Below are positions 8,801-50,851 of a stretch of 64,000 bases of DNA, piece by piece. Each line of letters starts with the position of its first letter. Within the stretch, counting starts at the first letter, position 1. Made by a program: the position numbers and the translations under genes. The notes below the pieces were generated by a model, which saw only the letters and a program-made list of their open reading frames with translations, was not told where the DNA came from and ran no database searches. Origin of the DNA: Ophelia neglecta (taxonomy: Eukaryota); the NCBI GenBank assembly GCA_965285935.1, contig OZ260662.1, positions 89,218,001-89,282,000 of the forward strand. The letters are read 5' to 3'.

Positions 8801-10728
8801 TTCCTGGCCTATTACAGCATTGTAAAAAAGAATCAAATAATGTAATGCTATCATTTGCTGTGCAAGAGTCTATAATGTGTTATACTGATAAACGTAGCAA
8901 GGTCTTCTCGGCATTTCTAGACGCTGAGAAGGCGTTCGATAAAGTGTGGTGGGACGGGCTTATGCTAAAATTATACCGTTTAGGAATCCAAGGGCGGTTG
9001 TGGCACCTTGTACGTTCTTGGTTTGACGGCTCAACGGAAATGGTAATGATAAATGGTGTAATGTCTGATGAAGCCTGTATATCGAGAAGTATTAAACAGG
9101 GTGGAATCCTCTCTTCCTTTTTCCACTCTGTAGCGTACCATGATATCCACTCCCATATTGCTACGACGGGGGATGGTATCAGAGCTGATGGGTTTGATGT
9201 TGGGAGCCCTACGTTGGCCGATGACACAGCACTGATTTCTCCAACTCACAATGGGCTCCAGCGCATGCTGAATGCCGCCAATGAATATGCTAGGAAATGG
9301 AAACTAAGTTTTTCTTGCCCGAAGAGTAAGATTATTGTCTTTGGGGAAAGTTAAAGGGAGCAGAGAAACAACAGCTTGAAACGTCAATGGACCATGGGTG
9401 GAAAACCTCTGGAGGAAGTTTTCAATGATACCCACGTGGGGGTGCTGTTATCGGCTGATCTGTCTACCAAGTCTCAAATTTTTGTATCATGTTCAATAGG
9501 TCGGCAGCAAATTGCTGCTATGGCGGGTGTCGGGGTGAGGTCCAGTGGCCTCAATCCTATCATCTCAGTCCGGTTATGGGAGAAAGTGTGTATACCGTCC
9601 GTGCTTCACGGGTGCGAAGTGTTGAATTCTGTAACGGCTTCAGAATATCAGTCGCTGGAGAGAGCACTGCCATATGTCGCCAGGGCCATCCAGGGGTTCC
9701 CGCGCCGGATACATAATGCAGTCTCTCTTGGTGCGCTTGGGTGGTGGTCAATGGAATCGGTGATCGACATAAAGAAATTGATGTTTTGTCAAAAGCTTAT
9801 AACTCTGTCTGACAAACATTTGTCTCGTCTTGTTTTTAACTGTCGCATGGCAAACTGGGGTTCGGAAGCATCTAGAGCTACTGGCTTTGTCCCAGATATT
9901 TTTAGAATAGCTGTGAAATATGAGCTTGACCAGTACGTAACAAATTGTATTACTACTAACACAATTCCTTGTAAATCACAGTGGAAAAGCATAGTGAAAG
10001 GGGCAGTTGGAGAACGAGAGCAAGCATTGTGGCTGACTGAAGTCAATTCGAAGACGGGGTGTGGTGTCTTTAGGTTGGTTAACAGAGAATTGGCACCCTC
10101 ACCTCTGTATCAATTTGCCAAGCGTCATATCAGATGTAGCAACAATGTGATGAACATGTGTTATTTATTTTCCCTGTATAATGAAGCGTTTGATATTACT
10201 TGTATTTTGTGTGAAAAAACTATCCAGAGGCCTATTGAACATATGTGCTGTGATAACGGATGCCCAGTACTGTGCCAAATCAGAGATAGCTTTAGTGGCA
10301 TATACTTGTTGATGTTTTGCCGGTAAGAGAGTACATTGTAATTGATATGTGTAATGAAACCGAACTGGTGAATTATTTCATGGGAGATGTTGTTGTAGAG
10401 GATGCTGAAGCGCATGACCTAGCTTTGGAGCTATTCTTTGAGACGTCTGGCCCCCTGGCAAAGCGTATTTTCCGTTTAGGTTACAGGCCTTTATCAGGAG
10501 TACTGGCAAATTAGTGTATATAATTTTGAAATGTGTATTGAATACTTATATGAAGAGTGTATGTAATTTTGATATGCAATTTGAAGATGTGTAATGCCTA
10601 ATATTAATAATGTATATGACTATATATTTTTTTATGTTGAATGTCTGTTTATTAGCTTGATTGAATGTAATGTTTGCTCTCATTAAGTTGAGGAATATAA
10701 TAAAATACATATATATACATACATACAT
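5870..10728 (+). mobile_element. 5'-truncated, disrupted two-ORF non-LTR retrotransposon (RTE group, RTEX/Proto2-like; clade tentative)
   Basis: Coiled-coil ORF1 pieces (5917-6990). APE endonuclease (SFNC, QEHHL, AGDLNA, IDHF, TSDH), RT (YRGVTL, FLDAEKAFD, KQGG, LADD) and C-terminal CxxC..H..C. AATAAA plus (TACA/TA)n tail. Frameshifts and stops. 5' boundary approximate. Confidence 0.9.
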
Positions 10729-11233
10729 TCCCTTAGTATTTCACCCGTTATTTGTCTTACGTCAATATACAGGATAAAATAATATAATACCACACACAAC
10801 CTTTCTTTTACTTACGTAGTGATTATCTAATTCAGCCGCTTGCTTTATGGTGGATCTTGTGAAAAGTAGAGAATCATTAAGACATTCTTACGAACCTTAC
10901 CATTACAAAACTATCAATTTGCCGAATTTCTTGCGAATCCTTTGCGAATTTTACGAATGCCTTAGAATGCTCTCGCAAATCTTGCGAATGCCTGCAAACG
11001 CCTTACGAATGAAACAACTAAATGGCGAATTGCACATTAACCTCCGTTATAGTTTTGTTTTGTCACTTGTTTGCCAGCCGCCGCCGAGTCAACATCGTCA
11101 TATTCAGAATTATTTATTGGATATCTATAAGAATCGCTTGTGATTGCTTACGAAAATGTTGCAAAAGCAATCAGAATTTGATTCCCTGGCGAATTTAAAG
11201 CGCTTGTTCTTAATAAACACCCCATGAACGACC

Positions 11234-24100: not shown

Positions 24101-27100
24101 GAAACTGCGATTAACATATCTAATGTTGGCTTTATTGCTTTTATTTACTATTGACTTCAGAAATAATACACTGTGAAGAGAATAACATCATTTGTGAAAA
24201 TAGCGGGACGTGTAGAGATACAGCGGACGGATTTGTTTGTGATTGTCTTCCCTTGTTTGTTGGAACCTACTGCGAAGATGGTAAAATGACAGCAACTCGA
24301 TTACTTATATTTAAAGGCATTATTATGTATTCATCGTTTGATAACCCAAATTAAATGAAACAATGTATCGTTATCAGCATACAGCCCCTGTGAACCAAGC
24401 CCCTGCCAGAATGGTGGAACGTGTTCTCATGATGGAAAAACAGCAACTTGTTACTGTGCCTTGTGTGGATGTGCAGATGAAGTCATGGGAGAATTCTGTG
24501 AAAATGGTAAAACCAGTCGAATCAAGTCCGAGACTACCTTAAAAATATTTTCTGGAGATTATCAAGCTTTAAGAGTTCTAGTAGTTATTCTATTGACTAA
24601 AACGACTGAATACGAAATACATCAGCGGTATCGGGAACTTCGATAAGCTTAATCTAATAAAGCTACGTGTAGAAGTATCATGAGCTCTAAGTTCATGACT
24701 TTCAGGAATTATTTCATTGGGTGAAATTCCCGAAACACTTTCTCCCAGAAACAGTAAGTTCAGGAGTTATTTAATTGGTATAAACTCCTGCATGTAACTC
24801 CTCGACAATGGAATGATTCGTATTTACATAGAAAATACCGGCCATACGCCCTTATCATTACGCACAGCTTCCATATAAACCATGAAAATGGATTTATTTG
24901 GCATCTTAGACTGTAAATTTACAGATCTGGTGAATTGTAACATAGACGATGGCTATTACCCTGACCCTGACGACTGTACAAAATGGAATAGATGTTTTAA
25001 CGGCGCGCTCATTGACTCGGATAACTGCACAGAGGGACAAGTAGCCTCACCAGAACCATTATTGAAGTGTGAATATGAGGGTTCCGTCAGCTGTGCCTCT
25101 GATGTTATTATACCCACACAGCGTAGGTCTCCTTTATATAATAGATTCAGATTCGTACCATACTGGCAGTTTTGTACTCTACAGATAATGACAAAACTAA
25201 TACTAAAGACCAACACAATTACCGCTCACTGTTATATGTTTTCCCACAACTATGTTAATGGAGTAATGATGGTAATATTAAAGAACCATCTGTAGGGGGT
25301 TTCTTTTATTGGAAACAAGGCAGTTATTTACAACGCCACAAATAAAGATGTTTTACGGAATTGCTTCTAAATAATCGAGGAAGGCAGTGCAGTTACCCTT
25401 TTCTAGGCGTGTGACAGCAGACCTTTGTGATTAAAAACGCCCAGAGGGACATTAAATCATCAGAAAACATCAGTTAATACAGTCTTAAATTATTTGAGGT
25501 ACATCTTCTTTTAACAAATATGAAGGCATATAAGTGAAATTCTAAATGCGCCTAACGATTTTGCTGTAAATACAGCACCAGTTTTAAGTTGCCTCGACGT
25601 CACCTGTGAAAATGCAGCGACTTGTGATGACACTGTGGCCGGCTATATGTGTGTATGTCCGTCCGGCTTTACTGGAAGATTATGTGAAAGTGGAAAGTTT
25701 CCTATTTGGATATGCGTGCTACATGTGTAAAGGATTATCACATCCGCCAATCCCAAAATACTAGGGTAGGACAATCTCGTACATGGAAATTCTACAGTTT
25801 GGTTAGACCGGAGGACGTTATATACCAGCATTTCCAGACGTGTTCCCAATTAAGAAAAGAGGCTCCTGGGTTGAGGCAAGGGTTAGTATAGGACTCCTAT
25901 GTGACCTTTCAAACAGGGGATTTCCAACAGGGTCTCTGTATTCGGCGCTGCGTTCATGGCGCTGTTTGTTTAGCGTTATTGCACTTGCCCGCATTGTGAG
26001 CGGCAACTGGGACAGCGGAGTGCCGAATAACGGGAGCGCATCCAATACGCATATACCATGCAGTACACTTAAATATATATAATTTCCAAAGTCTAATGCA
26101 TGTTTCTAGGTTTTCATTTATGAAAAGCAATAACGATGTCTGGTAATCTTGACAATGGTATTAGCCTTGACGAGGAGGATTTCGAGTCCATTACCTGTGA
26201 CCAACGGAAATATGACCAAGAAACCGAAACGAGGACGGCTACTCTTAGCAGTCAAGAGATCACATCAAATAACTCACCTTGGGATCTCGACTCCGATAAC
26301 CAAATGCAAACAAGTGATCTGACAAAACTGTTGGATATGAGTGGGTTACCTCGCGACACTCTTGTAGCACGATTACTAGAGTCTAACACCGAGGACGACC
26401 TCCTGGCGCTCCGGAATGATCTGCATCCTAAAGCGCGCGAATCACCTCTCTGTCCTGAAGGTAGTCTAGTAGGACGCAGGAGACCGAGGACAGGTGCTGG
26501 GGAACCAATAAATCTGAAGTTAGCCAAGGACTGCTATGCCCTGATCCTGTTTATTAAGGATGGCTTGCCTGACCAGATACGGGACATCATTAATTCTAAA
26601 GTGCCGTTCTCCGCCAGAGATGAGAGTAGGCCTCTGAGTCAGCTCCAATCACAATCTGAAAATAACGAACAAGCACGGAACGGCGCTGTAAATGATCTGA
26701 TAAATGGTTTAGACATAGACCGTTTTGCTTTAATAATGTCAGAGATTCATGAACTAAAAGAGCGTGTTCAAGAGCTCAATGTAGAAAACAAAGAGTTAAA
26801 AAGTATAATTCAGAAACTGGAACTTTACACAAACACGTCTAACATTGAAGCCCATTTAGTGAAAAATTATCTTGAAAGCGTAGATAATGTAAACGCTGTC
26901 ACCATCGAAAATGAAGATGAGCCTAATTCTTCCATAACTAATTCGCCACAAAACGACATTCACGATTCGTTTAGACTCCTGACAAATTGGGCAAGTGATG
27001 ACAGTAGTATGGCAATAAAGAAAACACCAAAGGACACGAAAAGAGTGTTTGACTCCATCAAAGATGTTAAATCGAATCTAGCTAGGGAATCTTACACCCG

Positions 27101-30100
27101 AGAACGCGATTCTAAAGAGATGAAGGATAACTACAGGCGTTTGAAAGACCGTGTTAGTGTGTTAGAAAAGGAATGCGAAGACGAGAAATGACTATGGTCA
27201 ACAAATGGCCATATCATGTTAAGAATGATGGAAGACATAGAAACAATAGAACGCACTTTTGAGAACAAACTCACTAGGCCCAGAATAGATAATCCGTCAA
27301 CTCCGCCACATGAACCGCACGAAATACCAGTAGTTATATCTTCAAGGCCAGCTGAGAAGAGTGTACCCTGTAGTTCCACCACGCCCCTGTTCACCGAAAC
27401 GAATTTTACCAGGACCCCATTAAATCGTTCGTCTGATTCAGACACAATAAAACTATATGTCGGAAACATAGACAATTTCAAAAATTCTTGAGAAAGTTGT
27501 GGCAAAGAGAATTGATGATCATATTCGAAATAACATGCTTCAGGACCCCTTGCAGTCTGCCTACCGTCAGCAGCATTCAACTGAGACTGCTCTGCTTAGA
27601 GTTCACTCGGATGTCACGGAAGCCCTTGATGCGGGACACATGGTTGCTCTGGTGATGTTAGATTTGTCTGCAGCATTCGACACTATAGATCACACTATTT
27701 TTCTCCAACGGCTTGAGACAATGTACGGTATCGCAGGTGATGCTCTGCGATGGTTTCAGTCATACTTAACCAATAGATCTCAACAGGTCTCTATTGATGG
27801 GTCTTTGTCACCCAAGAGGGAACTATGTTTCGGTCTACCACAGGGATCAGTACTTGGGCCAAAGGGATACAGCATATACTGCCGGCCGGTAGGTTATATT
27901 GTGAATCAACATGGCCTGCGCTATCACTGTTATGCTGATGATACTCAGCTATATCTTGTAATAAAATCAAGGGATGAGTGGAGTGCTGCTTCTGAGTCAA
28001 TTGAGTTTTGTGTCACAGATATATGCAGGTGGATGACAAGGAACAGACTCAAGTTGAATGAGGGTAAAACGGAGGTGATCTTTTTCACACCTCAGCGCTC
28101 ACAGGATAGATTTGGTGACCTGTCGCTGAGCATTGGAGGGACTATTATTAGACCTCAAAAGTGTGTAAAAAATCTTGGTTGCTACCTAGATTCCCACCTA
28201 TGTATGGACACACAAGTAGGTCGGATTGTGAAATCAGGATATTTTCAACTGCGGAACATTGGCCGCATCCGTCGATATCTGACAGAGGATGCGTGCCGTG
28301 CCCTCGTGCAGGCACTTGTTGTGTCAAGACTGGACTATGGCAATGCCTTGCTCATTGGACTCCCTCTTCGGCAAATATTGCGACTGCAGAAGTTGCAAAA
28401 TGCAGCTGCACGTCTGGTCTCGGGAGTGAGAGGAAGGGGGCACATCACTCCAGTGTTGCGCCAATTACATTGGTTGCCAGTATGTCAACGGATACATTTC
28501 AAAGTCCTTCTATATGTGTACAAGGCACTTAATGGGCTGGCACCACAGTACTTATCTGAACTATTTGAAATATATGTCCCTGCTAGATCATTGAGGTCTG
28601 GAGAAAAACTGTTGCTTGAGGTGCCGAGGGCAAGAACCACTACTTATGGTGACAGAAATTTTAAGCGGGTTGGTGCAATTCTGTGGAATGAACTTCCTGA
28701 CAGTCTTAAAAATGCCTCTTCAGTGAACATTTTTAAAAAAAATCTTAAAACTTATCTTTTTACCTTAGCATATAACTGATCAGTGATAGTATTGTGTGAT
28801 ATTTATTTTGGTTCACCTATGCATAGAGGATCTGGTATGTGTTTTTGGCACAATTTTAAATCTAGTCTCGTTGGTTCTTATCATATAATGCTATGTAAAT
28901 ACTTTATTCATCATTTAACATGTGTATGTTTTTAAATGCCAGTGCCTATTTTTATGTAAAGCGCTTTAGAGTATGTACCATAGATAAAGCGCTCTAGAAA
29001 TACTGTTAATAATAAATAATAATAATAATAATGATGTGGACACTAATTCCTTCCTCGTATATTTGCAACGCAAAGGTGTACCTTGCTTAGAGTGGAGCTT
29101 GTTCCACAGCCGAAAAACAGGCAGACAAGCCGCCCTGATCCGGGTTCCAGCAAAATGGAAGCAAAGTATGCTAAATTCACGTTTTTGGCCGTCTGATGGT
29201 TACGCACGGGTATGGTACGAAAGAGACTCTTATAACTCCAATCATGGGTAACAAGAAAGACATAGTGATAGGTACTCTTAATTGCCAAGGTATAATGAGA
29301 AACGCACCTTTCATCGCCGACGTGTTGGATACATTTGAATTAGACTTTCTCTCAGTGACTGAACATTGGCTTTTACCCAATAGTCTTAATTTCCTCAAAA
29401 GTGTCCATAAAGAGTATGAATACCATGGCGTAGTGCACGAAGGTCTGTCGTGGAATGATACATACAATAGAGGAAAAGGGGGTGTGGCCATCCTCTGGAA
29501 TAAAGCATTGTCCCATATGATCAAAAGGTTGCCGATAACAAGTGATAGAATTGTGGGCATTCAACTTCAAATAAAAAAAGAAACATACTTCACCTTACTG
29601 TCAGTATATCTTCCGTCTTCTTATTCCAGCCTCTCAGACTTTACTGACTATCTAAATGAACTAGAAACATTGAACGCTCAGTATGCAACATACAGTGATG
29701 TAATCATCATGGGAGACTTCAATGCGCAAGTAGGGGGTGACAGATCAGCAGTACGTGTAAATAACATTAGAGACAAGATGGTAGATGATTTCGTGAGACG
29801 GTATGAATTCATCTCGTTGCCAGTCGATGCTTTGTGCTCGGGGCCAGTCTTTACATTTTCCCGAGGAGAATCCAAAAGCTTAAGTGATCACATCCTGGTG
29901 AACAATAGAAAAATCGACACTGTGCTGTGGTGTAAAGTTCTCCCTGAAAAGCCATTAATCTAAGCGACCACAATGCTGTGATTGCGTCGATTGGTGTAGT
30001 TAACTTTAACAAGACAGTTGCGCAACAGACCAAGCTGTGTACTAGAAATGTTTGGCATGCCCTCCCGATTAGAGACATAATTCAGACATATGGGAGACAG

Positions 30101-33100
30101 GTGGAATGTAAATTAGCAACTCTAAATGTTTTACCACTCGCGGTTTCAGCCGAACAGATCGATAAACGTCATGAATACATTACTGAAACATTAAAACAGG
30201 CTGCGCGTGCAACAATACCCCAAACAAATTTTAATAGTGTGTCTAAACCGTACTGGAAATGCAGTGGTCTGTCTGAGATACACGCCAAGCTTCGAGCAGC
30301 AAAAGCCGTGTGGATTCAAGAAGGAAAGCCCAGAGGATGTACTTTTAAATCCTATGTTGACTATAAATACGCTAAAAGGGTATATCGCTGCAAGCGTAGA
30401 GCATGCGAAAGGCAAATGCAGTCCGACATTGACAACGAAATAGAGATTGCAGCAGAGACTGATCAAAGAAAACTAAGTGCTCTTCTTAGGAGAAGTCAAG
30501 TTAAAAAGATTGCGCTCAACGAGCTTAAGGTTGGGGACACAGTGATCAGAGAAAGTGACGATGTTCTCGAGTCGTGGTATACACATTTTAAGGATATATA
30601 TACAGCAAAAGACTACGCCCAATACGACCAAACTCATGAAATTTACACTAATACCATACTCTCCGGTTTGAAAACCACTTCAGCCAGTGAAACTGACGAG
30701 ATAATGTCGGAGCCGTTGACTGAAGCAGAGGTTAAGAAAATGATAGCTAGTTTGAAAATGGGAAAGGCACCCGGTCATGACGCTATTCAAAACGAACACC
30801 TAAAATATGGGGGACCTGTGCTAGTAAAAATGTTGTCTGAACTATTCAACAGTATGTATAGAAAGAGCTACGTACCGTGGGGAATGAAACTCGGCCTGAT
30901 AGTCCCTCTCTTCAAAGGCGTTAAAAAGCACTCAGATGACAGAAAAAATCACAGGGGAGTTACCCTACTGCCAGCTACATATAAACTCTGGGAGCGATTA
31001 ACACTGCAGAGATTCAGAGATTGGATGGAGCATCGCCAAATTGCTTTTCCTCACCCACTGCAAAATGCCTACCAGAGAAACAAAGACAGCCTTATGACAT
31101 CTTTGATAACGCAAGAAAGTATCCGACACTTCAGAGAAAGGGGGTCGACTGTGTACGTGTGTCTTCTGGACTCGAGCACTGCATTCGACTCGGTATGGCA
31201 TCCGGGTCTCTACATAAATATGCACAAACTTGGAATTCGAGGAAAGTTTTGGCAGCTCCTGTTGGCATCTTACACCGGCAGATCATGTCAAATACTCGTG
31301 GACGGTGAAAAGTCTCGCAGTTTTGGCTTTGAACAGTCCGTTATGCAAGGGTCGGTCTGGGGACCCTGGATACTCATGGTTCACTATGACAGTCTACTGT
31401 GGAGCCTTCAGAAAAGTGGGTCCGGACTTAATCTGGATGGGGTCTATGTTGGTTGCCCAACTCAAGCGGACGATACGGTCCTGTTGGCCAGAAGCCCACT
31501 AGAGCTGCAAATCATGATAGACTTATGTTGGGACTACGCCTGTAAATGGCGATTCAATTGTAATCCTGCAAAATCAAAAGTTTTAATATATGGGAAAGGA
31601 AACAAGTCTAACCTCGAATGGAAGCTAGACAATTCCATCATACCAATAGTCACAGAGGAGGTTCATGTCGGAGTTGTGTTGAATAGCTCATTTAGAATGG
31701 ACGAGCAAGTAAATCGTTCCTGTGGTAAACTCCGAAGTAGATTGTCAGCGGCCCTCCGGCTTGGTGCTACTCCGGTCACAATGTCTAAAGTTTATAACTC
31801 TAACGTTCTCTCCAGTGCAATGTACGGGTGCGAGCTGTGGAATAATTTGACAGCAACGAATGTGAGTAAACTAGAAGTCGCGCACAGGTACTGCGCAAAA
31901 TACATCCAGGGATTCCACCGTGGAACGAGAACAGATATAGCGCTTGGAATGATCGGATGGCAAAGCGCTGTCACATATATAGACATTAAAAAACTACGAT
32001 TCTTTAGTCGTTTGTGCCATAGCGATCCCGGGGATTTTGTTAAACGAGTAGTCTTGAAAAGACTATGGAGTACAGTAGCCAACAAAGCGAACAACGGATT
32101 TATAGCTGATTGTGTTGAGCTTTTTAAAATGTATGGCTTAACAGAATGGCTCATTGATTTTATGTTAAGATGTCATTTCCCGACCAAGACAGTCTGGTCA
32201 AGCCTATTGCTGAAGGCTGTGAACACAAACGTCAATAGTGATCGTGCCATTGCTTTAGCCTCCGAGCCGTATCTGTCGAGATGGCTGAAACTACAAGAAA
32301 AGACCCTCGCGAGTGACTCTTCGCTATCACCAGCCGGAATTTGGCAGTACGCGAGGAAAAACCGGGGACTTCTGAGATGCGCACGGGACTTTGCTAAAAT
32401 GTATGCTATTCCAAGCTACGCACAGGGACAATGCCATCTCTGCGATCAAACGTTCGATGACATTGTTATTCACATGGTATGTTTTTGTGAAGCCTTTTCG
32501 GCCGAACGTGATGTGTTTTGGTCGGTTGGACTGAGCACACTTCCTGCTATCATTGAAGTGTATTTGTGTAATTTGAGTGAGGACGAACTAGTAGAACACC
32601 TTCTCGGATACATACCTGATGTTTCACCCTTCGCACCCGACGAACATGATATATTTATGGATTGGTCCGTCAAAGTATGGCGAACAATACCAAAACACAT
32701 TTGGCAGTGCGACGAATGTAAAAAACTGTGTTTTTGTAGATAAGTGGAAAAACGACGCTAATGGCAGCTTCAATATAGGCCTACCGCATATCACATGGAA
32801 ATAATTACGTAATATATTTCATCATAGACCCGAGCACGGACTTACAATTCTATAGAAATGCCATGCGGTATATGAACTTTATTGTAAATAATATAATGTT
32901 AACACGCTTTGGCTAATCATTCCAGACTTCTCTCGTAAAAAAGTGCTACTGGTCAATATACATGAACATATTTCTTTATATATTGTTAACACATTGTCTA
33001 ATTCATTACATATTTCGTTCCTGTACTTGGTACTCTTCATATAATGGAGGTAATAAACTAATATATATATATAATATATATATATATATATCAGCATACA

Positions 33101-39100: not shown

Positions 39101-42100
39101 TATAGCGCTTGGAATGATCGGATGGCAAAGCGCTGTCACATATATAGACATTAAAAAACTACGATTCTTTGGTCGTTTGTGCCATAGCGATCCCGGGGAC
39201 GTTGTTAAACGAGTAGTCTTGAAAAGACTATGGAGTACAGTAGCCAAAAAAGCGAACAACGGATTTATAGCTGATTGTGTTGAGCTTTTTAAAAAGTATG
39301 GCTCAACAGAATGGCTCATTGATTTTATGTTAAGATGTCATTTCCCGACCAAGACAGTCTGGTCAAGCCTATTGCTGAAGGCTGTGAACACAAAAGTCAA
39401 TAGTGATCGTGCCATTGCTTTATCCTCCGAGTCGTATCTGTCGATATGGCTGAAACTACAAGAAAAGACCCTCGCGAGTGACTCTTCGCCATCACCAGCC
39501 GGAATTTGGCAGTACGCGAGGAAAAACCGGGGACTTCTGAGATGCGCACGGGATTTTACTAAAATGTATGCTATTCCAAGCTACGCACAGGGACAATGCC
39601 ATCTCTGCGATCAAACGTTCGATGACATTGTTATTCACATGGTATGTTTTTGTGAAGCCTTTTCGGCCGAACGTGATGTGTTTTGGTCGGTTGGACTGAG
39701 CACACTTCCTGCTATCATTGAAGTGTATTTGTGTAATTTGAGTGAGGACGAACTAGTAGAACACCTTCTCGGATACATACCTTATGTTTCACCCTTCGCA
39801 CCCGACGAACATGATATATTTATGGACTGGTCAGTCAAAGTATTGCGAACAGTACCAAAACACATTTGGCAGTGCGACGAATGTAAAAAACTGTGCTTTT
39901 GAGGATATTAAGTGGAAAAACGACGCTAATGACAGCTTCAATATAGGCCTACCGCATACCAGATGGAAATAATTACGTAATATATTTCATCATAGACCCG
40001 AGCACGCACTTATAATTCTATAGAAATGCCATGCGGTATATGAACTTTATTGTAAATAATATAATGTTAACACGCTTTGGCTAATCATTCCAGACTTCTC
40101 TCGTAAAAAAGTGCTACTGGTCAATATACATGAACATATTTCTTTATATATTGTTAACACATTGTCTAATTCATTACATATTTCGTTCCTGTACTTGGTA
40201 CTCTTCATATAATGGAGGTAATAAACTAATATATATAATATATATATATATATATCAGCATACAGCCCCTGTGAACCAAGCCCCTGCCAGAATGGTGGAA
40301 CGTGTTCTCATGATGGAAAAACAGCAACTTGTTACTGTGCTGTGCCTTGTGTGGATGTGCAGATGAAGTCATGGGAGAATTTTGTGAAAATGGTAAAACC
40401 AGTCAAATCAAGTCCGAGACTACCTTAAAAATATTTTCTGGAGATTATCAAGCTTTAAGAGTTCTAGTAGTTATTCTATTGACTAAAACGACTGAATACG
40501 AAATACATCAGCGGTATCGGGAACTTCGATAAGCTTAATCTAATAAAGCTACGTGTAGAAGTATCATGAGCTATAAGTTCATGACTTTCAGGAATTATTT
40601 CATTGGGTGAAATTCCCGAAACACTTTCTCCCCAGAATCAGTAAGTTCAGGAGTTATTTAATTGGTATAAACTCCTGCATGTAACTCCTCGACAATGGAA
40701 TGATTCGTATTTACATAGAAAATACCGGCCATACGCCCTTAGCATTACGCACAGCTTCCATATAAACCATGAAAATGGATTTATTTGGCATCTTAGACTG
40801 TAAATTTACAGATCTGGTGAATTGTAACATAGACGATGTCTATTACCCTGACCCTGACGACTGTACAAAATGGAATAGATGTTTTAACGGCGCGCTCATT
40901 GACTCGGATAACTGCACAGAGGGACAAGTAGCCTCACCAGAACCATTATTGACGTGTGAATATGAGGGTTCCGTCAGCTGTGCCTCTGATGTTATTATAC
41001 CCACACAGCGTAGGTCTCCTTTATATAATAGATTCAGATTCGTACCATACTGGCAGTTTTGTACTCTACAGATAATGATAAAACTAATACTAAAGACCAA
41101 CACAATGACCGCTCACTGTTATATGTTTTCCCACAACTATGTGAATGGAGTAATGATGGTAATATTAAAGAACCATCTGTAGGGGGTTTCTTTTATTGGA
41201 AACAATGCAGTTATTTACAACGCCACAAATAAAGATGTTTTACGGAATTGCTTCTAAATAATCGAGGAAGGCAGTGCAGTTACCCTTTTCTAGGCGTGTT
41301 ACAGCAGACCTTTGTGATTAAAAACGCCCAGAGGGACATTAAATCATCAAAAAACATCAGTTAATACAGTCTTAAATTATTTGAGGTACATCTTCTTTTA
41401 ACAAATATGAAGGCATATAAGTGAAATTCTAAATGCGCCTAACGATTTTGCTGTAAATACAGCACCAGTTTTAAGTTGCCTCGACGTCACCTGTGAAAAT
41501 GCAGCGACTTGTGATGACACTGTGGCCGGCTATATGTGTGTATGTCCGTCCGGCTTTACTGGAAGATTATGTGAAAGTGGTAAGTTTCCTATTTGGATAT
41601 GCGTGCTACATGTGTAAAGGATTATCACATCCGCCAATCCCAAAGTACTAGGGTAGGACAATCTCGTACATGGAAATTCTACAGTTTGGTTAGACCGGGG
41701 GAACGTTATATACCAGCATTTCCAGACGTGTTCCCAATTAAGAAAAGAGGCACCTGGGTTGAGGCAAGGGTTAGTATAGGACTCCTATGTGACCTTTCAA
41801 ACAGGGGATTTCCAACAGGGTCTCTGTATTCGGCGCTGCGTTCATGGCGCTGTTTGTTTAGCGTTATTGCACTTGCCCGCATTGTGAGCGGCAGCTGGGA
41901 CAGCGGAGTGCCGAATAACGGGAGCGCATCCAATACGCATATACCATGCAGTACACTTAAATATATATAATTTCCAAAGTCTAATGCATGTTTCTAGGTT
42001 TTCATTTATGAAAAGCAATAACGATGTCTGGTAATCTTGACAATGGTATTAGCCTTGACGAGGAGGATTTCGAGTCCATTACCTGTGCCCAACGGAAATA

Positions 42101-45100
42101 TGACCAAGAAACCGAAACGAGGACGGCTATTCTTAGCAGTCAAGAGATCACATCAAATAACTCACCTTGGGATCTCGACTCCGATAACCAAATGCAAACA
42201 AGTGATCTGACAAAACTGTTGGATATGAGTGGGTTACCTCGCGACACTCTTGTAGCACGATTACTAGAGTCTAACACCGAGGACGACCTCCTGGCGCTCC
42301 GGAATGATCTGCATCTTAAAGCGCGCGAATCACCTCTCTGTCCTGAAGGTAGTCTAGTAGGACGCAGGAGACCGGGGACAGGTGCTGGGGAACCAATAAA
42401 TCTGAAGTTAGCCAAGGACTGCTATGCCCTGATCCTGTTTATTAAGGATGGCTTGCCTGACCAGATACGGGACATCATTAATTCTAAAGTGCCGTTCTCC
42501 GCCAGAGATGAGAGTAGGCCTCTGAGTCAGCTCCAATCACAATCTGAAAATAACGAACAAGCACGGAACGGCGCTGTAAATGATCTGATAAATGGTTTAG
42601 ACATAGACCGTTTTGCTTTAATAATGTCAGAGATTCATGAACTAAAAGAGCGTGTTCAAGAGCTCAATGTAGAAAACAAAGAGTTAAAAAGTAAAATTCA
42701 GAAACTGGAACTTTACACAAACACGTCTAACATTGAAGCCCATTCAGTGAAAAATTATCTTGAAAGCGTAGATAATGTAAACGCTGTCACCATCGAAAAT
42801 GAAGATGAGCCTAATTCTTCCATAACTAATTCGCCACAAAACGACATTCACGATTCGTTTAGACTCCTGACAAATTGGGCAAGTGATGACAGTAGTATGG
42901 CAATAAAGAAAACACCAAAGGACACGAAAAGAGTGTTTGACTCCATCAAAGATGTTAAATCGAATCTAGCTAGGGAATCTTACACCCGAGAACGCGATTC
43001 TAAAGAGATGAAGGATAACTACAGGCGTTTGAAAGACCGTGTTAGTGTGTTAGAAAAGGAATGCGAAGACGAGAAATGACTATGGTCAACAAATGGCCAT
43101 ATCATGTTAAGAATGATGGAAGACATAGAAACAATAGAACGCACTTTTGAGAACAAACTCACTAGGCCCAGAATAGATAATCCGTCAACTCCGCCACATG
43201 AACCGCACGAAATACCAGTAGTTATATCTTCAAGGCCAGCTGAGAAGAGTGTACCTTGTAGTTCCACCACGCCCCTGTTCACCGAAACGAATTTTACCAG
43301 GACCCCATTAAATCGTTCGTCTGATTCAGACAAAATAAAACTATATGTCGGAAACATAGACAATGATGTGGACACTAATTCCTTCCTCGTATATTTGCAA
43401 CGCAAAGGTGTACCTTGCTTAGAGTGGAGCTTGTTCCACAGCCGAAAAACAGGCAGACAAGCCGCCCTGATCAGGGTTCCAGCAAAATGGAAGCAAAGTA
43501 TGCTAAATTCACGTTTTTGGCCGTCTGATGGTTACGCACGGGTATGGTACGAAAGAGACTCTTATAACTCCAATCATGGGTAACAAGAAAGACATAGTGA
43601 TAGGTACTCTTAATTGCCAAGGTATAATGAGAAACGCACCTTTCATCGCCGACGTGTTGGATACATTTAAATTAGACTTTCTCTCAGTGACTGAACATTG
43701 GCTTTTACCCAATAGTCTTAATTTCCTCAAAAGTGTCCATAAAGAGTATGAATACCATGGCGTAGTGCACGAAGGTCTGTCGTGGAATGATACATACAAT
43801 AGAGGAAAAGGGGGTGTGGCCATCCTCTGGAATAAAGCATTGTCCCATATGATCAAAAGGTTGCCGATAACAAGTGATAGAATTGTGGGCATTCAACTTC
43901 GAATAAAAAAAGAAACATACTTCACCTTACTGTCAGTATATCTTCCGTCTTCTTATTCCAGCCTCTCAGACTTTACTGACTATCTAAATGAACTAGAAAC
44001 ATTGAACGCTCAGTATGCAACATACAGTGATGTAATCATCATGGGAGACTTCAATGCGCAAGTAGGGGGTGACAGATCAGCAGTACGTGTAAATAACATT
44101 AGAGACAAGATGGTAGATGATTTCGTGAGACGGTATGAATTCATCTCGTTGCCAGTCGATGCTTTGTGCTCGGGGCCAGTCTTTACATTTTCCCGAGGAG
44201 AATCCAAAAGCTTAAGTGATCACATCCTGGTGAACAATAGAAAAATCGACACTGTGCTGTGGTGTAAAGTTCTCCCTGAAAAGCCATTAATCTAAGCGAC
44301 CACAATGCTGTGATTGCGTCGATTGGTGTAGTTAACTTTAACAAGACAGTTGCGCAACAGACCAAGCTGTGTACTAGAAATGTTTGGCATGCCCTCCCGA
44401 TTAGAGACATAATTCAGACATATGGGAGACAGGTAGAATGTAAATTAGCAACTCTAAATGTTTTACCACTCGCGGTTTCAGCCGAACAGATCGATAAACG
44501 TCATGAATACATTACTGAAACATTAAAACAGGCTGCGCGTGCAACAATACCCCAAACAAATTTTAATAGTGTGTCTAAACCGTACTGGAAATGCAGTGGT
44601 CTGTCTGAGATACACGTCAAGCTTCGAGCAGCAAAAGCCGTGTGGATTCAAGAAGGAAAGCCCAGAGGATGTACTTTTAAATCCTATGTTGACTATAAAT
44701 ACGCTAAAAGGGTATATCGCTGCAAGCGTAGAGCATGCGAAAGGCAAATGCAGTCCGACATTGACAACGAAATAGAGATTGCAGCAGAGACTGATCAAAG
44801 AAAACTAAGTGCTCTTCTTAGGAGAAGTCAAGTTAAAAAGATTGCGCTCAACGAGCTTAAGGTTGGGGACACAGTGATCAGAGAAAGTGACGATGTTCTC
44901 GAGTCGTGGTATACACATTTTAAGGATATATATACAGCAAAAGACTACGCCCAATACGACCAAACTCATGAAATTTACACTAATACCATACTCTCCGGTT
45001 TGAAAACCACTTCAGCCAGTGAAACTGACAAGATAATGTCGGAGCCGTTGACTGAAGCAGAGGTTAAGAAAATGATAGCTAGTTTGAAAATGGGAAAGGC

Positions 45101-48100
45101 ACCCGGTCATGACGCTATTCAAAACGAACACCTAAAATATGGGGGACCTGTGCTAGTAAAAATGTTGTCTGAACTATTCAACAGTATGTATAGAAAGAGC
45201 TACGTACCGTGGGGAATGAAACTCGGCCTGATAGTCCCTCTCTTCAAAGGCGTTAAAAAGCACTCAGATGACAGAAAAAAATCACAGGGGAGTTACCCTA
45301 CTGCCAGCTACATATAAACTCTGGGAGCGATTAACACTGCAGAGATTCAGAGATTGGGTGGAGCATCGCCAAATTGCTTTTCCTCACCCACTGCAAAATG
45401 CCTACCAGAGAAACAAAGACAGCCTTATGACATCTTTGATAACGCAAGAAAGTATCCGACACTTCAGAGAAAGGGGGTCGACTGTGTACGTGTGTCTTCT
45501 GGACTCGAGCATTGCATTCGACTCTGTATGGCATCCGGGTCTCTACATAAATATGCACAAACTTGGAATTCGAGGAAAGTTTTGGCAGCTCCTGTTGGCA
45601 TCTTACACCGGCAGATCATGTCAAATACTCGTGGACGGTGAAAAGTCTCGCAGTTTTGGCTTGGAACAGTCCGTTATGCAAGGGTCGGTCTGGGGACCCT
45701 GGATACTCATGGTTCACTATGACAGTCTACTGTGGAGCCTTCAGAAAAGTGGGTCCGGACTTAATCTGGATGGGGTCTATGTTGGTTGCCCAACTCAAGC
45801 GGACGATACGGTCCTGTTGGCCAGAAGCCCACTAGAGCTGCAAATCATGATAGACTTATGTTGGGACTACGCCTGTAAATGGCGATTCAATTGTAATCCT
45901 GCAAAATCAAAAGTTTTAATATATGGGAAAGGAAACAAGTCTAACCTCGAATGGAAGCTAGACAATTCCATCATACCAATAGTCACAGAGGAGGTTCATG
46001 TCGGAGTTGTGTTGAATAGCTCATTTAGAATGGACGAGCAAGTAAATCGTTCCTGTGGTAAACTCCGAAGTAGATTGTCAGCGGCCCTCCGGCTTGGTGC
46101 TACTCCGGTCACAATGTCTAAAGTTTATAACTCTAACGTTCTCTCCAGTGCAATGTACGGGTGCGAGCTGTGGAATAATTTGACAGCAACGAATGTGAGT
46201 AAACTAGAAGTCGCGCACAGGTACTGCGCAAAATACATCCAGGGATTCCACCGTGGAACGAGAACAGATATAGCGCTTGGAATGATCGGATGGCAAAGCG
46301 CTGTCACATATATAGACATTAAAAAACTACGATTCTTTGGTCGTTTGTGCCATAGCGATCCCGGGGACGTTGTTAAACGAGTAGTCTTGAAAAGACTATG
46401 GAGTACAGTAGCCAAAAAAGCGAACAACGGATTTATAGCTGATTGTGTTGAGCTTTTTAAAAAGTATGGCTCAACAGAATGGCTCATTGATTTTATGTTA
46501 AGATGTCATTTCCCGACCAAGACAGTCTGGTCAAGCCTATTGCTGAAGGCTGTGAACACAAAAGTCAATAGTGATCGTGCCATTGCTTTATCCTCCGAGT
46601 CGTATCTGTCGATATGGCTGAAACTACAAGAAAAGACCCTCGCGAGTGACTCTTCGCCATCACCAGCCGGAATTTGGCAGTACGCGAGGAAAAACCGGGG
46701 ACTTCTGAGATGCGCACGGGATTTTACTAAAATGTATGCTATTCCAAGCTACGCACAGGGACAATGCCATCTCTGCGATCAAACGTTCGATGACATTGTT
46801 ATTCACATGGTATGTTTTTGTGAAGCCTTTTCGGCCGAACGTGATGTGTTTTGGTCGGTTGGACTGAGCACACTTCCTGCTATCATTGAAGTGTATTTGT
46901 GTAATTTGAGTGAGGACGAACTAGTAGAACACCTTCTCGGATACATACCTTATGTTTCACCCTTCGCACCCGACGAACATGATATATTTATGGACTGGTC
47001 AGTCAAAGTATTGCGAACAGTACCAAAACACATTTGGCAGTGCGACGAATGTAAAAAACTGTGCTTTTGAGGATATTAAGTGGAAAAACGACGCTAATGA
47101 CAGCTTCAATATAGGCCTACCGCATACCAGATGGAAATAATTACGTAATATATTTCATCATAGACCCGAGCACGCACTTATAATTCTATAGAAATGCCAT
47201 GCGGTATATGAACTTTATTGTAAATAATATAATGTTAACACGCTTTGGCTGATCATTCCAGACTTCTCTCGTAAAAAAGTGCTACTGGTCAATATACATG
47301 AACATATTTCTTTATATATTGTTAACACATTGTCTAATTCATTACATATTTCGTTCCTGTACTTGGTACTCTTCATATAATGGAGGTAATAAACTAATAT
47401 ATATAATATATATATATATATATCAGCATACAGCCCCTGTGAACCAAGCCCCTGCCAGAATGGTGGAACGTGTTCTCATGATGGAAAAACAGCAACTTGT
47501 TACTGTGCTGTGCCTTGTGTGGATGTGCAGATGAAGTCATGGGAGAATTTTGTGAAAATGGTAAAACCAGTCAAATCAAGTCCGAGACTACCTTAAAAAT
47601 ATTTTCTGGAGATTATCAAGCTTTAAGAGTTCTAGTAGTTATTCTATTGACTAAAACGACTGAATACGAAATACATCAGCGGTATCGGGAACTTCGATAA
47701 GCTTAATCTAATAAAGCTACGTGTAGAAGTATCATGAGCTATAAGTTCATGACTTTCAGGAATTATTTCATTGGGTGAAATTCCCGAAACACTTTCTCCC
47801 CAGAATCAGTAAGTTCAGGAGTTATTTAATTGGTATAAACTCCTGCATGTAACTCCTCGACAATGGAATGATTCGTATTTACATAGAAAATACCGGCCAT
47901 ACGCCCTTAGCATTACGCACAGCTTCCATATAAACCATGAAAATGGATTTATTTGGCATCTTAGACTGTAAATTTACAGATCTGGTGAATTGTAACATAG
48001 ACGATGGCTATTACCCTGACCCTGACGACTGTACAAAATGGAATAGATGTTTTAACGGCGCGCTCATTGACTCGGATAACTGCACAGAGGGACAAGTAGC

Positions 48101-50851
48101 CTCACCAGAACCATTATTGACGTGTGAATATGAGGGTTCCGTCAGCTGTGCCTCTGATGTTATTATACCCACACAGCGTAGGTCTCCTTTATATAATAGA
48201 TTCAGATTCGTACCATACTGGCAGTTTTGTACTCTACAGATAATGATAAAACTAATACTAAAGACCAACACAATGACCGCTCACTGTTATATGTTTTCCC
48301 ACAACTATGTGAATGGAGTAATGATGGTAATATTAAAGAACCATCTGTAGGGGGTTTCTTTTATTGGAAACAATGCAGTTATTTACAACGCCACAAATAA
48401 AGATGTTTTACGGAATTGCTTCTAAATAATCGAGGAAGGCAGTGCAGTTACCCTTTTCTAGGCGTGTGACAGCAGACCTTTGTGATTAAAAACGCCCAGA
48501 GGGACATTAAATCATCAGAAAACATCAGTTAATACAGTCTTAAATTATTTGAGGTACATCTTCTTTTAACAAATATGAAGGCATATAAGTGAAATTCTAA
48601 ATGCGCCTAACGATTTTGCTGTAAATACAGCACCAGTTTTAAGTTGCCTCGACGTCACCTGTGAAAATGCAGCGACTTGTGATGACACTGAGGCCGGCTA
48701 TATGTGTGTATGTCCGTCCGGCTTTACTGGAAGATTATGTGAAAGTGGTAAGTTTCCTATTTGGATATGCGTGCTACATGTGTAAAGGATTATCACATCC
48801 GCCAATCCCAAAATACTAGGGTAGGACAATCTCGTACATGGAAATTCTACAGTTTGGTAAGACCGGAGGACGTTATATACCAGCATTTCCAGACGTGTTC
48901 CCAATTAAGAAAAGAGGCTCCTGGGTTGAGGCAAGGGTTAGTATAGGGCTCCTATGGGACCTTTCAAACAGGGGATTTCCAACAGGGTCTCTGTATTCGG
49001 CGCTGCGTTCATGGCGCTGTTTGTTTAGCGTTATTGCACTTGCCCGCATTGTGAGCGGCAGCTGGGACAGCGGAGTGCCGAATAACGGGAGCGCATCCAA
49101 TACGCATATACCATGCAGTACACTTAAATATATATAATTTCCAAAGTCTAATGCATGCTTCTAGGTTTTCATTTATGAAAAGCAATAACGATGTCTTTTT
49201 GATTTATCTGGCAGAGATTATTGCCTGTGAGAACACAACCTGTGAAAATAACGGTACCTGTGTGAATGGCGCAGACGGTTTTGAATGTAACTGTCCAGCT
49301 AATTACAAAGGGACCAGATGTGAATCTGGTAAGTGCTTCAATAAATCCTTTTTATAATAATATTGCATATTAGTTTCGTTAAAATTCCGTAGCCTGCAGT
49401 TTCCTATGGAATTTATATTTTGAAGAAAGAAGGTTGACAAATGTTTAAAATTAATGTCAGTAATGGAGCCATGTGATTATACCCCGTGTAATAATGGCGG
49501 GACATGCGTCAACCAGGGGGACAACTTCATGTGTTTTTGTGCGGCATGTCCATGTGCCACTCAGAATTCCTCTACTTGCGATGAAGGTTTGATCTTTATT
49601 TGCAAATTTTATCCCCAACACTAGCTATTTAAACAATCTATCATACACATATTATATTCATTTTGATGAGCATGTCCAGATCGATAATTCGACAGCATAA
49701 TAACATCCCTTGTGAACTTTTTAGTGCGAATTTATGGAGTCGGTATATTGGTCGAGCGGGGAGTTGCAAAAATCGAGGGGCGGGAGGTTAACCAGTTCTA
49801 CACTTCCTGATATACACCTCTGGAGTAGGCCCGGTGTAAAAGGAATATATTACTGTTGCTGTGTAATTGGCCTAGGCTTCCAGGGATCATGCCTGTACTT
49901 CTACATTCCTGTTTTTTAAATGAGCAAACGTGTGAAGAAGCAAACTATATAGGAGAATCGTTAAAAACATAGCAATAAATTGCCGCATTAAAGCGGACTA
50001 GAAAGCTCGAGCCCGAAAAACAGTGGCGCGAAATTCCTAAGCCCTAAAAACCGACTGTGCCAAAAACCGCTCGTTTGTAGATGGGGAAGGAATTCGTCAC
50101 TTAAAGAAGAAAAAAGTGTGGTACATACACCATTTACCACATCTTTAAGCGTCGGACCTGGTGGCAGATCTATAATATACTTTTTGCCGAGGCCATCTGC
50201 TCGTTTAACTCACTGCTCGACTTTCCATCTCATCCCTCACTTTTGTAAGTCGCTCCTCATAGCCGGACCAATTTACACTCTCTTATTTATTCCGATCAAT
50301 AACGTTTGGTCTTTAGCCAAATTTATATTGCAAAATAGTATAAAGTCCCTTCTGGTCGCACATTTAGTATGGCCACAACAGTAATGCTACTTGAGAAATA
50401 CTAAACGTATATAATTATATGCATGGTCGTTTTGATAATTATGAGTTTGTGTAAGAAATCAAGTTTATCCAGGATTTTGAATAAAATATGAAATTAATAT
50501 TATCCCATGTGAAGTTGTACAGTGTTTATCCGTGCTCCTATAATATATTCCTCTTTCCGTATTAACGCAGAAAGTATATTTCGTAGAAACGATCGGGACT
50601 CTAACCTAAGAGTACTTTTTCCCCACACAGATTTTATGTCATGCCAGGGAAAGCCGAATGGACACTATCCACACCCTGATGATTGCACTTCAAGGATTAA
50701 TTGCTGGGAAGACCTTATTACGGTCGACCCATGTCCACCTGGCATAGTATTTGACCCCTCTAAAGGCTGGTGTGAAGATCCAGCCAATGTACCGTGTGCT
50801 CAGACCTACATAGACACAACGTCTTCACAAACTGGTAACACGCCTACTTAG
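14978..50851 (+). CDS. Paralog B: type II membrane SEA / mucin / EGF / CBM14 chitin-binding protein (~738 aa counting one copy of the duplicated exons and four intact mucin exons); functional status uncertain
   Basis: Exons join in frame by splice phase: 14978-15131, 15871-15891, 16866-16966, 17157-17230, 18858-19108, mucin exons, 22027-22140, 24161-24280, 24378-24506, 24925-25122, EGF (25576/34295/41463/48631), 49215-49328, 49461-49586, 50631-50851. Confidence 0.75.
15205..15245. repeat. Imperfect (CTC)n microsatellite
   Basis: ctctcttctcctcctcctactcctccttctcctcctcctt; absent after the paralog C exon. Confidence 0.8.
15871..15891 (+). CDS. 21-nt microexon (DEPPNIP stalk)
   Basis: Strong sites ttttgtgttcttgcag / gtaagt, phase 1-1. 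Confidence 0.7.
16866..19108 (+). CDS. SEA domain exons (16866-16966, 17157-17230, 18858-19108)
   Basis: Spliced VIGEMKLVDTTFISEFNDLSSEESTTVTSPFCAA-VARSIKDSKDLSFLYEDDCIVTELR-AGSVIVVFTVSF. Phases 1/0/2/1 fit, and it carries a GSVVV-type motif. Confidence 0.8.
17640..18330 (-). mobile_element. Highly decayed LINE RT fragment (CR1/L2 group) in an intron
   Basis: Remnant motifs QYGFR and ALDNGNCVLALLFLDISKAF on the minus strand. Confidence 0.55.
19975..22131 (+). repeat. 428-bp tandem array, 5 units, each with one Ser/Thr/Pro-rich mucin exon (20076-20192, 20501-20619, 20928-21047, 21356-21475, 21784-21903)
   Basis: Exact 428-bp period in units 3-5. Exon encodes EEISTAGSPEVSGTSLGKQALESTSYDTTARGPTIKPTTI, phase 1-1, gtgagt donor. 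Unit 2 has a 1-nt deletion. Confidence 0.92.
22027..22140 (+). CDS. EGF-like exon
   Basis: EYTDCNNIMCQNNGSCNDSTNQFVCECIPGTTGVYCEI, 114 nt, phase 1-1. Confidence 0.85.
24161..24280 (+). CDS. EGF-like exon
   Basis: [40 protein letters not shown], 120 nt, phase 1-1. Confidence 0.85.
24372..26141 (+). repeat. Host block H1 (1770 bp): EGF8 exon 24378-24506, CBM14 exon 24925-25122, EGF exon 25576-25692 (donor mutated GT>GA)
   Basis: First of four near-identical direct copies, retaining the native upstream flank. Confidence 0.93.
26142..33088 (+). mobile_element. Two-ORF non-LTR retrotransposon copy L-1 (RTE group, RTEX/Proto2-like; clade tentative), interrupted by an L2 element
   Basis: ORF1 26136-29251 (coiled coil plus RRM-like LYVGNID). 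ORF2 from ATG 29244 with APE (TLNCQG, TEHWL, MGDFNA, SDH), RT (HRGVTL, LDSSTAFD, MQGS, QADD) and CHLC..H..C. AATAAA plus (TA)n tail. Confidence 0.93.
27477..29032 (+). mobile_element. 5'-truncated L2-clade LINE nested in ORF1 of L-1
   Basis: Uninterrupted 426-aa RT/C-terminus (QSAYRQQHSTETALL, DLSAAFDTIDH, YADDTQLY, HITPVLRQLHWLPV), L2-type 3' end gtaaagcgcttt..aaagcgctctagaaat and (AAT)n tail. Empty site gacaat|gatgtgg in L-2 and L-3. Confidence 0.95.
33089..34861 (+). repeat. Host block H2: EGF8 33095-33223, CBM14 33644-33841, EGF 34295-34411, all open
   Basis: Direct copy of H1 beginning right after the (TA)n tail. Confidence 0.93.
34862..40252 (+). mobile_element. LINE copy L-2
   Basis: Same 5' and 3' junctions as L-1, no L2 insert, extra +1 A frameshift near 38110. 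Confidence 0.93.
40253..42029 (+). repeat. Host block H3: EGF8 40259-40392 (5-nt duplication, frameshift), CBM14 40812-41009, EGF 41463-41579
   Basis: tgtgc duplicated at 40336-40345. G>V change in CBM14. Confidence 0.93.
42030..47420 (+). mobile_element. LINE copy L-3
   Basis: Almost identical to L-2, period 7168 bp. Confidence 0.93.
47421..49196 (+). repeat. Host block H4: EGF8 47427-47560 (same frameshift as H3), CBM14 47980-48177, EGF 48631-48747
   Basis: Last copy. It continues into the native intron (atgtct|ttttgattt), collinear with paralog A. Confidence 0.93.
49215..50851 (+). CDS. Paralog B 3' exons: EGF 49215-49328, EGF8 49461-49586, terminal CBM14 50631-50851
   Basis: Homologous to 1485-1598, 1732-1857 and 3483-3706, with splice sites intact. 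Confidence 0.85.

Follow-up and report, generated by a model that had tools for sequence, protein, structure and literature searches.

Long interspersed nuclear elements (LINEs) typically leave target-site duplications (TSDs) shorter than 20 bp, and the systems closest to the locus described here are those in which longer ones have been reported. In the green alga Chlamydomonas reinhardtii, more than half of the de novo insertions of Dualen-4b_cRei are bordered on both sides by a duplication of more than 50 bp (median, 900 bp). The authors interpret these as exceptionally long TSDs, tentatively due to the two endonucleases of the element, one restriction-like (RLE) and one apurinic/apyrimidinic-like (APE), and they exceed the previous record (PMC9977147). 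That record, 126 bp, belongs to R9, an rDNA-specific LINE of bdelloid rotifers (Gladyshev and Arkhipova 2009, as cited in PMC9977147). For human L1, tandem duplications of 1-10 kb that are "regarded as large TSDs" occur at low frequency in tumours and over-expression clones, and break-induced synthesis from the reciprocal end has been proposed (bioRxiv 10.1101/2024.12.14.628481); one 22.6-Mb tandem duplication bridged by L1 is known from tumours (PMC7058536). For some elements of the RTE group, an earlier note on the DNA studied here had mentioned TSDs of hundreds of bp, a precedent that we did not find: PMC6007223, after Ichiyanagi and Okada, gives 7-15 bp. Here we analyze a 64-kb stretch of the genome of Ophelia neglecta (assembly GCA_965285935.1, contig OZ260662.1, positions 89,218,001 to 89,282,000 of the forward strand), called the window below, in which an APE-type LINE, L, lies inside a gene with EGF and CBM14 exons and is flanked on both sides by copies of a 1.77-kb block of that gene.

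Anatomy of the LINE-bridged array

Throughout, coordinates are positions in the window, H stands for the host block and L for the LINE. A repeat finder and a self-BLAST of the window return the order H1-L1-H2-L2-H3-L3-H4 over 24372-49196, about 25 kb, and so bear out, on the assembled window, the tandem array that the earlier note had described. The units of the array, the element nested in it and the paralog used for comparison are as follows.

24372..26141, + strand: H1, leftmost copy of the 1.77-kb host block, with the native left flank before it
26142..33088, + strand: L1, LINE with truncated ORF1, APE, reverse transcriptase (RT) and an AAACTAA(TA)n tail; a stop interrupts ORF2
27477..29029, + strand: nested 5'-truncated LINE of another family, 1553 bp, with an RT fragment and an (AAT)n tail; inside L1 only
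33089..34861, + strand: H2, chimeric copy; 5' part with an H4-type derived state, 3' end with H1-type derived states
34862..40252, + strand: L2, LINE copy; ORF2 split into three pieces
40253..42029, + strand: H3, chimera; 5' part equal to H4, 3' part equal to H2
42030..47420, + strand: L3, LINE copy; differs from L2 at 2 of 5391 positions
47421..49196, + strand: H4, rightmost copy of the host block, with the native right flank after it
1..1923, + strand: paralog A, ~89% identical to H4 plus the right flank

The four H copies (98.7-99.2% identity to H1; 3-18 substitutions and 1-3 indels between pairs) alternate with the three L copies at a period of 7168 bp, the first period being 8719 bp. All three H-to-L joints are the same, ...GATGTCT/GGTAAT (the slash marks the joint), and the 5' join of the LINE at 26141 reads exactly as previously described (aacgatgtct/ggtaat). 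All three L-to-H joints have the form (TA)n/TATCAGCATAC and connect the tail, as had been claimed, to a sequence that natively lies at 24372, 1770 bp upstream; because TA is common to tail and host, the start of H is ambiguous by 2 nt. Unique DNA precedes H1 and follows H4, and the junction sequences confirm that both native flanks survive, one to the left of H1 and the other to the right of H4. Judged by its sequence, a 1.77-kb direct repeat that is 99% identical and adjoins both ends of an insertion cannot be accounted for by chance.

Empty sites for both breakpoints are documented in paralogs. Paralog A is continuous over the equivalent of 26141, with its empty site at 1466/1467, in line with the position of ~1466 given for it before. 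The left breakpoint, 24372, is crossed without interruption in four paralogous modules upstream on the same contig, whereas H2-H4 match only from 24372 onward.

The LINE family and its flanking duplications

In another genomic copy, ORF2 of L is uninterrupted over 1182 aa and matches the Pfam families Exo_endo_phos (E=4.9e-15, aa 27-259) and RVT_1 (E=1.7e-16, aa 577-798), both of which are also present in the L copies of the window. A search of the Protein Data Bank (PDB) returned only L1 ORF2p for the RT, with the human protein matching at E=9e-21. By this domain order, with the endonuclease N-terminal to the RT in ORF2, L is an APE-type retrotransposon without long terminal repeats (LTRs), that is, a LINE. 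The family copies have a common 3' end with variable 5' truncation, carry neither LTRs nor terminal inverted repeats, and all end in AAACTAA(TA)n. Counting from the first base of the window L copy as element position 1, they start at 1, 442, 683, 950, 2120, 3746, 3913, 4741 or 4838, or 471 bp further 5'. The window L is thus 5'-truncated by ~471 bp compared with full-length copies, which measure 5.86 kb, and its ORF1 is truncated to 351 aa; other genomic copies keep a 541-aa ORF1 with a coiled coil, unlike typical RTE elements, in which ORF1 is short or absent. The intact 1182-aa ORF2 and 541-aa ORF1 occur in separate copies, and no examined copy is full-length with both. At 26136-27191 (and likewise from 34856 and 42024), the host sequence ATGTCT before the LINE joint supplies an in-frame ATG to the truncated ORF1, giving the 351-aa frame; ORF1 of full-length copies begins further upstream (MLLNGN...).

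After the RT, ORF2 carries a conserved C-terminal CX2C...H...C (CCHC) motif, followed by only ~75-85 unconserved residues, and one homolog ends right after the motif. Sequence-level tests detected no RLE: Pfam gave no match beyond the RT, and the last 383 aa have no PDB sequence match to R2 proteins. At this level, L lacks the C-terminal RLE that the Dualen clade has besides its APE. The nearest proteins are 28-34% identical and unnamed, and the only named ones among the better matches are from bivalves (a scallop, 29%, and a weaker partial match in a mussel).

The earlier note had claimed that this family duplicates kilobase-scale DNA on insertion, and had proposed comparing the DNA after the tail of other copies with the DNA upstream of their 5' ends. 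We searched the same genome with the last 400 bp of L, which gave ~20 copies with an intact 3' end and ~20 short partial matches in 762 Mb, extracted 10-kb stretches holding 18 of the copies and, in each, matched the sequence following the tail against that preceding the 5' junction. Copies with both flanks in common were counted as one event, which left 12 insertions, regarded as independent because their truncation points differ (1, 442, 683, 2120, full length). The loci are listed below.

L037, element start 442: flanking duplication of 2934 bp
Window copy, element start 1: flanking duplication of 1770 bp
L035, full length: flanking duplication of ~325 bp, 100% identical
L034, full length: flanking duplication of at least 129 bp, complex locus
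L033, element start 683: flanking duplication of ~122 bp, 100% identical
L039, element start 2120: flanking duplication of ~108 bp, 98% identical
L036, element start 1: 12-bp TSD
L031, L032, L047 and L048, various starts: no long duplication; 3' flanks genome-unique apart from dispersed repeats
L038 and L040-L046, element start 950 (3913 in L043): apparently carried in a larger dispersed repeat (see below)

Half of the independent insertions (6/12) are flanked by direct duplications, of 108-2934 bp, that adjoin both element ends. The other copies are not confined to short TSDs: five loci besides the window carry duplications of at least 108 bp. As far as the assembled copies tell, long flanking duplications (0.1-2.9 kb) recur in this LINE family, at about half of the resolvable insertions, and are not a one-off. 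The claimed family habit is in this way backed by independent loci, though with lengths of ~0.1-2.9 kb. The 2934-bp unit of L037 has exactly two matches in the genome, both ~100% identical, one at the tail and one at the 5' end. In each of the five long duplications whose start was mapped, the first bases are TAT or ATA and follow the (TA)n tail directly; at L034, the start could not be placed next to the tail. A start of this kind would be predicted if reverse transcription was primed on a TA-rich target after nicking. At the 5' junctions of six copies we found no microhomology, with at most 1 nt in common in the window copy, and the joints are blunt.

Several census loci deserve a separate description. 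Long inserts, from 3.3 kb up to full length, account for all six long duplications, and none is seen at the three short inserts (0.5-1.6 kb), numbers that are too small to test. At L034 (C1:16824449-16834448), the 129-bp block stands on both sides of the element, the upstream copy being without ~110 bp found in the downstream copy; the tail and the downstream block are separated by 300 bp of unrelated sequence that contains short tandem repeats. The eight loci L038 and L040-L046 (contigs C8, C9 and C12) have a common 3' flank, except L044 with a different one; in seven, the element begins at 950 and the 5' flank is the same too, and L043 (C8:68127266-68137265) starts at element position 3913 behind the terminus of another element. 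This group is apparently a LINE fragment carried inside a larger dispersed repeat.

In the frequency and size range of its long duplications, the L family resembles Dualen-4b. Unlike Dualen-4b, however, L has an APE only, with no RLE detected by sequence, its host is an animal and not a green alga, and its events are read from fixed or assembled copies, whereas those of Dualen-4b come from mutation-accumulation lines. With R9, L shares a long TSD as a regular property of an animal LINE family; R9 is specific for rDNA, with a TSD of 126 bp, whereas L uses dispersed TA-rich targets, with TSDs of 12 bp to 2.9 kb. In addition, R9 belongs to the RLE-bearing R2 group, in contrast to L with its APE. 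The human L1 cases come close in structure, since they too have an APE-type LINE at the joint of a direct tandem duplication, a signature of target-primed reverse transcription (TPRT) at the 3' junction and a TSD-consistent orientation, but they are a rare aberrant outcome in cancers and over-expression clones, as opposed to about half of the resolvable germ-line insertions in the L family. Exon shuffling by L1 3' transduction is similar in that a LINE event adds copies of host exons; it proceeds via RNA and to a new site, whereas here the block is copied in place as DNA, with its introns kept and in register with the gene. In the literature searched, we found no description of frequent kilobase-scale TSDs made by an APE-only animal LINE, which is not proof that there is none. 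What appears to be new here is the frequent formation of long duplications by such an element, together with a duplicated exon cassette that was then expanded.

Origin and expansion of the array

We consider it likely that the observed anatomy, the long duplications across the family and the chimeric H copies are, as a whole, best explained by a long-TSD insertion through TPRT, followed by two unequal crossovers. Specifically, a young, low-copy, 5'-truncated APE-type LINE would have inserted by TPRT into an intron of the EGF/CBM14 gene. A bottom-strand nick would have been made in TA-rich sequence 6 nt upstream of exon a of the block (24371/24372), where the (TA)n RNA tail can pair, and the completing top-strand 3' end would have been located not 10-20 bp but 1.77 kb further downstream (26141/26142). 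Once both long single strands were filled in, the three-exon block would be present on both sides of the element, giving H-L-H, a kilobase-scale TSD. The H repeats would subsequently have misaligned twice, with an early unequal crossover leading to H-L-H-L-H and a very recent one to H-L-H-L-H-L-H. The order of the nicks and the source of the distant top-strand end are what we infer rather than observe; this end could stem from a far second cut by the element endonuclease, from a host nick (for example at a replication fork) or from break-induced synthesis from the reciprocal end.

The placement of the second-strand break is among the least understood steps of retrotransposition, and breaks that lie 12 bp to 2.9 kb apart with an APE only offer a handle on it. 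The L family argues against a need for two endonucleases to make long TSDs. Going further, the chances seem to us evenly balanced that an APE-only LINE clade in the animal germ line makes TSDs of 0.1-3 kb as its usual outcome and not as a rare accident. If this is true, something other than the element would position the second-strand break, for example nicks that are replication-associated or otherwise of host origin; long TSDs would not require the dual endonucleases invoked for Dualen; and the clade would continually generate local tandem duplications, including intron-bounded exon cassettes that can later be expanded by unequal crossing-over. On the history proposed above, the locus also illustrates a route at the DNA level, in which one insertion makes its own long direct repeats and these recombine into a tandem array of exon cassettes. 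Such a route differs both from transduction and from a recombination that involves two transposon copies. In annotating this genome, tandem duplications bridged by a LINE should be read as insertion products and not as separate duplications.

The later steps can be traced in the variants of the H copies, with paralog A as the outgroup. H2 has the derived 25066C in common with H4 and the derived 25902T and 26103T in common with H1; by these variants, it is a chimera of the kind that arises if the right-hand H on one chromatid aligns with the left-hand H on the other chromatid. H3 is the same as H4 as far as 24855, a 5-bp insertion in exon a included, and the same as H2 from 25066 onward, with the exchange interval between the 24855- and 25413-equivalent positions. 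Because H2 and H3 are chimeric and L2 and L3 near-identical, we place two unequal exchanges in the history of the array. H1, H2 and H4 are roughly equidistant (~0.85-1.07%), for which reason the first exchange is dated to soon after the insertion; the second is, on the sequence differences, very recent. The idea that the long repeats seeded unequal crossing-over is in agreement with the chimeric H2 and H3 and with the 2 differences between L2 and L3 in 5391 positions. These steps fit non-allelic homologous recombination exactly, with the chimeric units marking the exchange intervals; unlike in its usual form, the seeding repeats would have been made by the insertion and not by two separate transposon copies. 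The nested LINE is present only in L1 and is therefore younger than the L1/L2 split.

Several points weigh against this explanation. The coupling between duplication and insertion is something we infer from recurrent anatomy at 6 of 12 loci in one assembly. Furthermore, the census is small, with 12 events, and four or five of these insertions are without a long duplication, so that the trait is not universal in the family. The 25-kb array itself rests on the assembly; the read data consulted were short contigs of one sample (three runs), possibly the assembly's own sample. Finally, the differences between L1 and L2/L3 cluster at element positions 4310-5152 (31999-32850 in L1, 39171-40013 in L2 and 46339-47181 in L3), which a simple history does not predict: 20 changes there are private to L2/L3 and 8 private to L1, with no private changes in common, and 27 are in common elsewhere. 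This cluster looks like a single ectopic gene-conversion tract of ~0.85-1.1 kb from a diverged copy, which would explain the numbers. No donor for the tract was found among the genome copies of the L family, and its L2/L3-private states are absent from all 11 other copies.

The H copies hold a further cluster. Six derived changes occur only in H2 and H3, within 450 bp (25413-25864 in H1 coordinates; window ~34131-34583 and 41299-41751), with H1, H4 and paralog A in the ancestral state, and they appear to form a second unexplained mutation cluster.

An alternative that we hold possible, if rather unlikely, is that the host repair setting and not the enzymes of the element sets the outcome, such that many LINE families end at the joints of local tandem duplications. 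It draws on a distinct LINE of the window, L' (30% aa identity to L), which also lies between direct repeats, here of 515 bp, and on human L1, which gives tandem duplications of 1-10 kb by a proposed repair route and the one of 22.6 Mb by sister-chromatid bridging. Yet short TSDs occur in this genome too, at most a few bp for the nested (AAT)n-tailed LINE in L1 and 12 bp at L036. Moreover, this alternative is a variant of the long-TSD insertion and compatible with it, changing only the maker of the second break.

4922-10718 (locus 4407..11233), + strand: L', related LINE with APE and RT and a TA-rich tail; 30% aa identity to L ORF2

The repeats around L' (4407-4921 and 10719-11233) are 94.6% identical; at the tail, the repeat begins with ATATAT, and paralog B crosses the left boundary without a break. 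The L' family has about a dozen copies. No similarity to L was found in ORF1 or at the 5' end, and 4922 is thus only a candidate 5' end; the stretch 4922-5521 has an 85% match in the neighbouring paralog module and is not seen with other family copies. The length of L', 5797 bp, is near the 5.86 kb of full-length L and speaks for 4922 being the true 5' end. Immediately to the right of its 515-bp repeat lies an element of 558 bp (11234-11791) that resembles a miniature inverted-repeat transposable element and has perfect 59-bp terminal inverted repeats. The terminus of this 558-bp element adjoins an L-family copy at L043 as well.

It is also improbable that the array is in part an assembly artefact, in which H2(3')-L2-H3(5') and H3(3')-L3-H4(5') are one unit assembled twice. 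The two units are separated by just 3 differences in 7168 bp, and the contig depth of H is ~2.4x that of the flank rather than 4x, though depths are not copy numbers. On the other hand, the units do differ at these 3 sites, H3 has a private substitution, and the older part H1-L1-H2-L-H4 is ~1% divergent and holds the nested insertion, which makes at least three H and two L real. The core claim of H-L-H is independent of the last unit.

In the comparison with the short contigs, the LINE and its (TA)n tail were skipped as repeats. One contig bridges the junction between H4 and the right flank, and another stops at 49196, as expected at a branch; they give no usable copy number. Over 47421-50700, the contig depth of H4 is ~2.3-2.7x that of the single-copy right flank in the three runs, including an H4-specific contig, and not 4x, with depths again not being copy numbers. 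The right flank is heterozygous. The depth ratio hints that the array may differ between haplotypes.

Far less probable still is that H-L-H arose by recombination, inside the LINE, between two chromosomes that each carried an independent short-TSD insertion of the same family, one at 24372 and the other at 26141. At one locus, such a recombinant and a long TSD are indistinguishable from sequence, and the cluster at 4310-5152, without private changes in common, would fit different crossover points between two parental elements. However, 5 further loci show this anatomy with differing truncation points, and with ~20 copies with an intact 3' end and ~20 short partial copies in 762 Mb, same-strand pairs within 3 kb at half of the loci are implausible. 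A fresh second insertion should also share variants of its lineage, whereas the L2/L3-private states of the cluster occur in 0 of 11 other copies.

We give the least credence to a capture at the RNA level, in which the extra H copies stem from host sequence carried along by the LINE transcript (5' or 3' transduction): the LINE does lie in sense orientation inside the gene, with an AATAAC motif 11 nt before the end of H, but there is no junction of left flank to L or of L to right flank, both array ends being H with native flanks, the H-to-L joints have neither poly(A) nor tail, a source element would stay next to a native flank and no element copy touches one, and simple H-L-H loci elsewhere have the same geometry. 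The junctions in this way contradict transduction; the earlier note had called the route distinct from 3' transduction. Two further readings were rejected. Duplication first is very unlikely, as the LINE would have had to hit, time after time, the precise joint of a tandem duplication already in place, which is not credible, and a pre-existing tandem repeat at the targets is contradicted by the lack of a third copy and by the single paralogs.

Duplicated exons and paralogous modules

The block H holds three exons, which we searched singly. They are listed here with the next exon of the gene and the lesions found in two of the copies.

24378..24506, + strand: exon a, EGF-like with 8 Cys, 129 nt; phase 1-1 model, weak Pfam match; intact in H1 and H2
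24925..25122, + strand: exon b, CBM_14 chitin-binding domain; phase 1-1 model, above the Pfam cut-off; alternative acceptor at 24910
25576..25689, + strand: exon c, EGF; phase 1-1 model, above the Pfam cut-off; putative boundary, with a weak donor GTGGAA
49215..49328, + strand: next EGF exon of the gene; acceptor 18 nt after the breakpoint between H4 and right flank
40335..40344, + strand: CTGTG-CTGTG 5-bp tandem duplication in exon a of H3, frameshift
47503..47512, + strand: CTGTG-CTGTG 5-bp tandem duplication in exon a of H4, frameshift

Both breakpoints, 24372 and 26141/49196, fall in the 3' ends of introns, 6 and 18 nt before the acceptor AGs, and H is therefore exactly a three-exon cassette. 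In H2-H4, the LINE tail replaces the polypyrimidine and branch region of exon a. The number of CBM14-type exons in this gene copy is 5, as had been stated. The accompanying claim, that the extra copies can splice in frame, fared less well: the three exons do have phase 1-1 models, but exon a is frameshifted in H3 and H4 and intact only in H1 and H2, so that the duplicated exons are not all open with symmetric phase. In a protein search of the genome, exon a is unbroken in H1 and H2 as well as in four paralogs, two of them 100% and two 95% identical, and the match in H3 and H4 is split over two frames; because of the unbroken copies, the 5-bp insertion is read as derived and disruptive. The full array could not be translated through unless exon a of H3 and H4 were skipped, and probably not all of the duplicated cassettes are used, two of four carrying the exon-a frameshift. 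Exonic differences among the H copies amount to 3 nonsynonymous, 1 synonymous and 1 frameshift, which looks like relaxed constraint on the extra cassettes. The earlier proposal of domain multiplication is weakened by these findings.

The gene region contains five paralogous EGF/CBM14 modules, at C2:89124211, 89146668, 89178304, 89217376 and 89242072 (the last at window position 24072), with a spacing of 22-39 kb. Between nearest modules, the stretch around exon a is 97-98% identical, compared with ~89% identity of the rest of H to paralog A, which suggests gene conversion or strong constraint on that part. Further upstream in the window, a tandem repeat of five units of ~428 bp each (19976-22057; 86-96% identical) lies just upstream of an EGF exon at 22038-22133.

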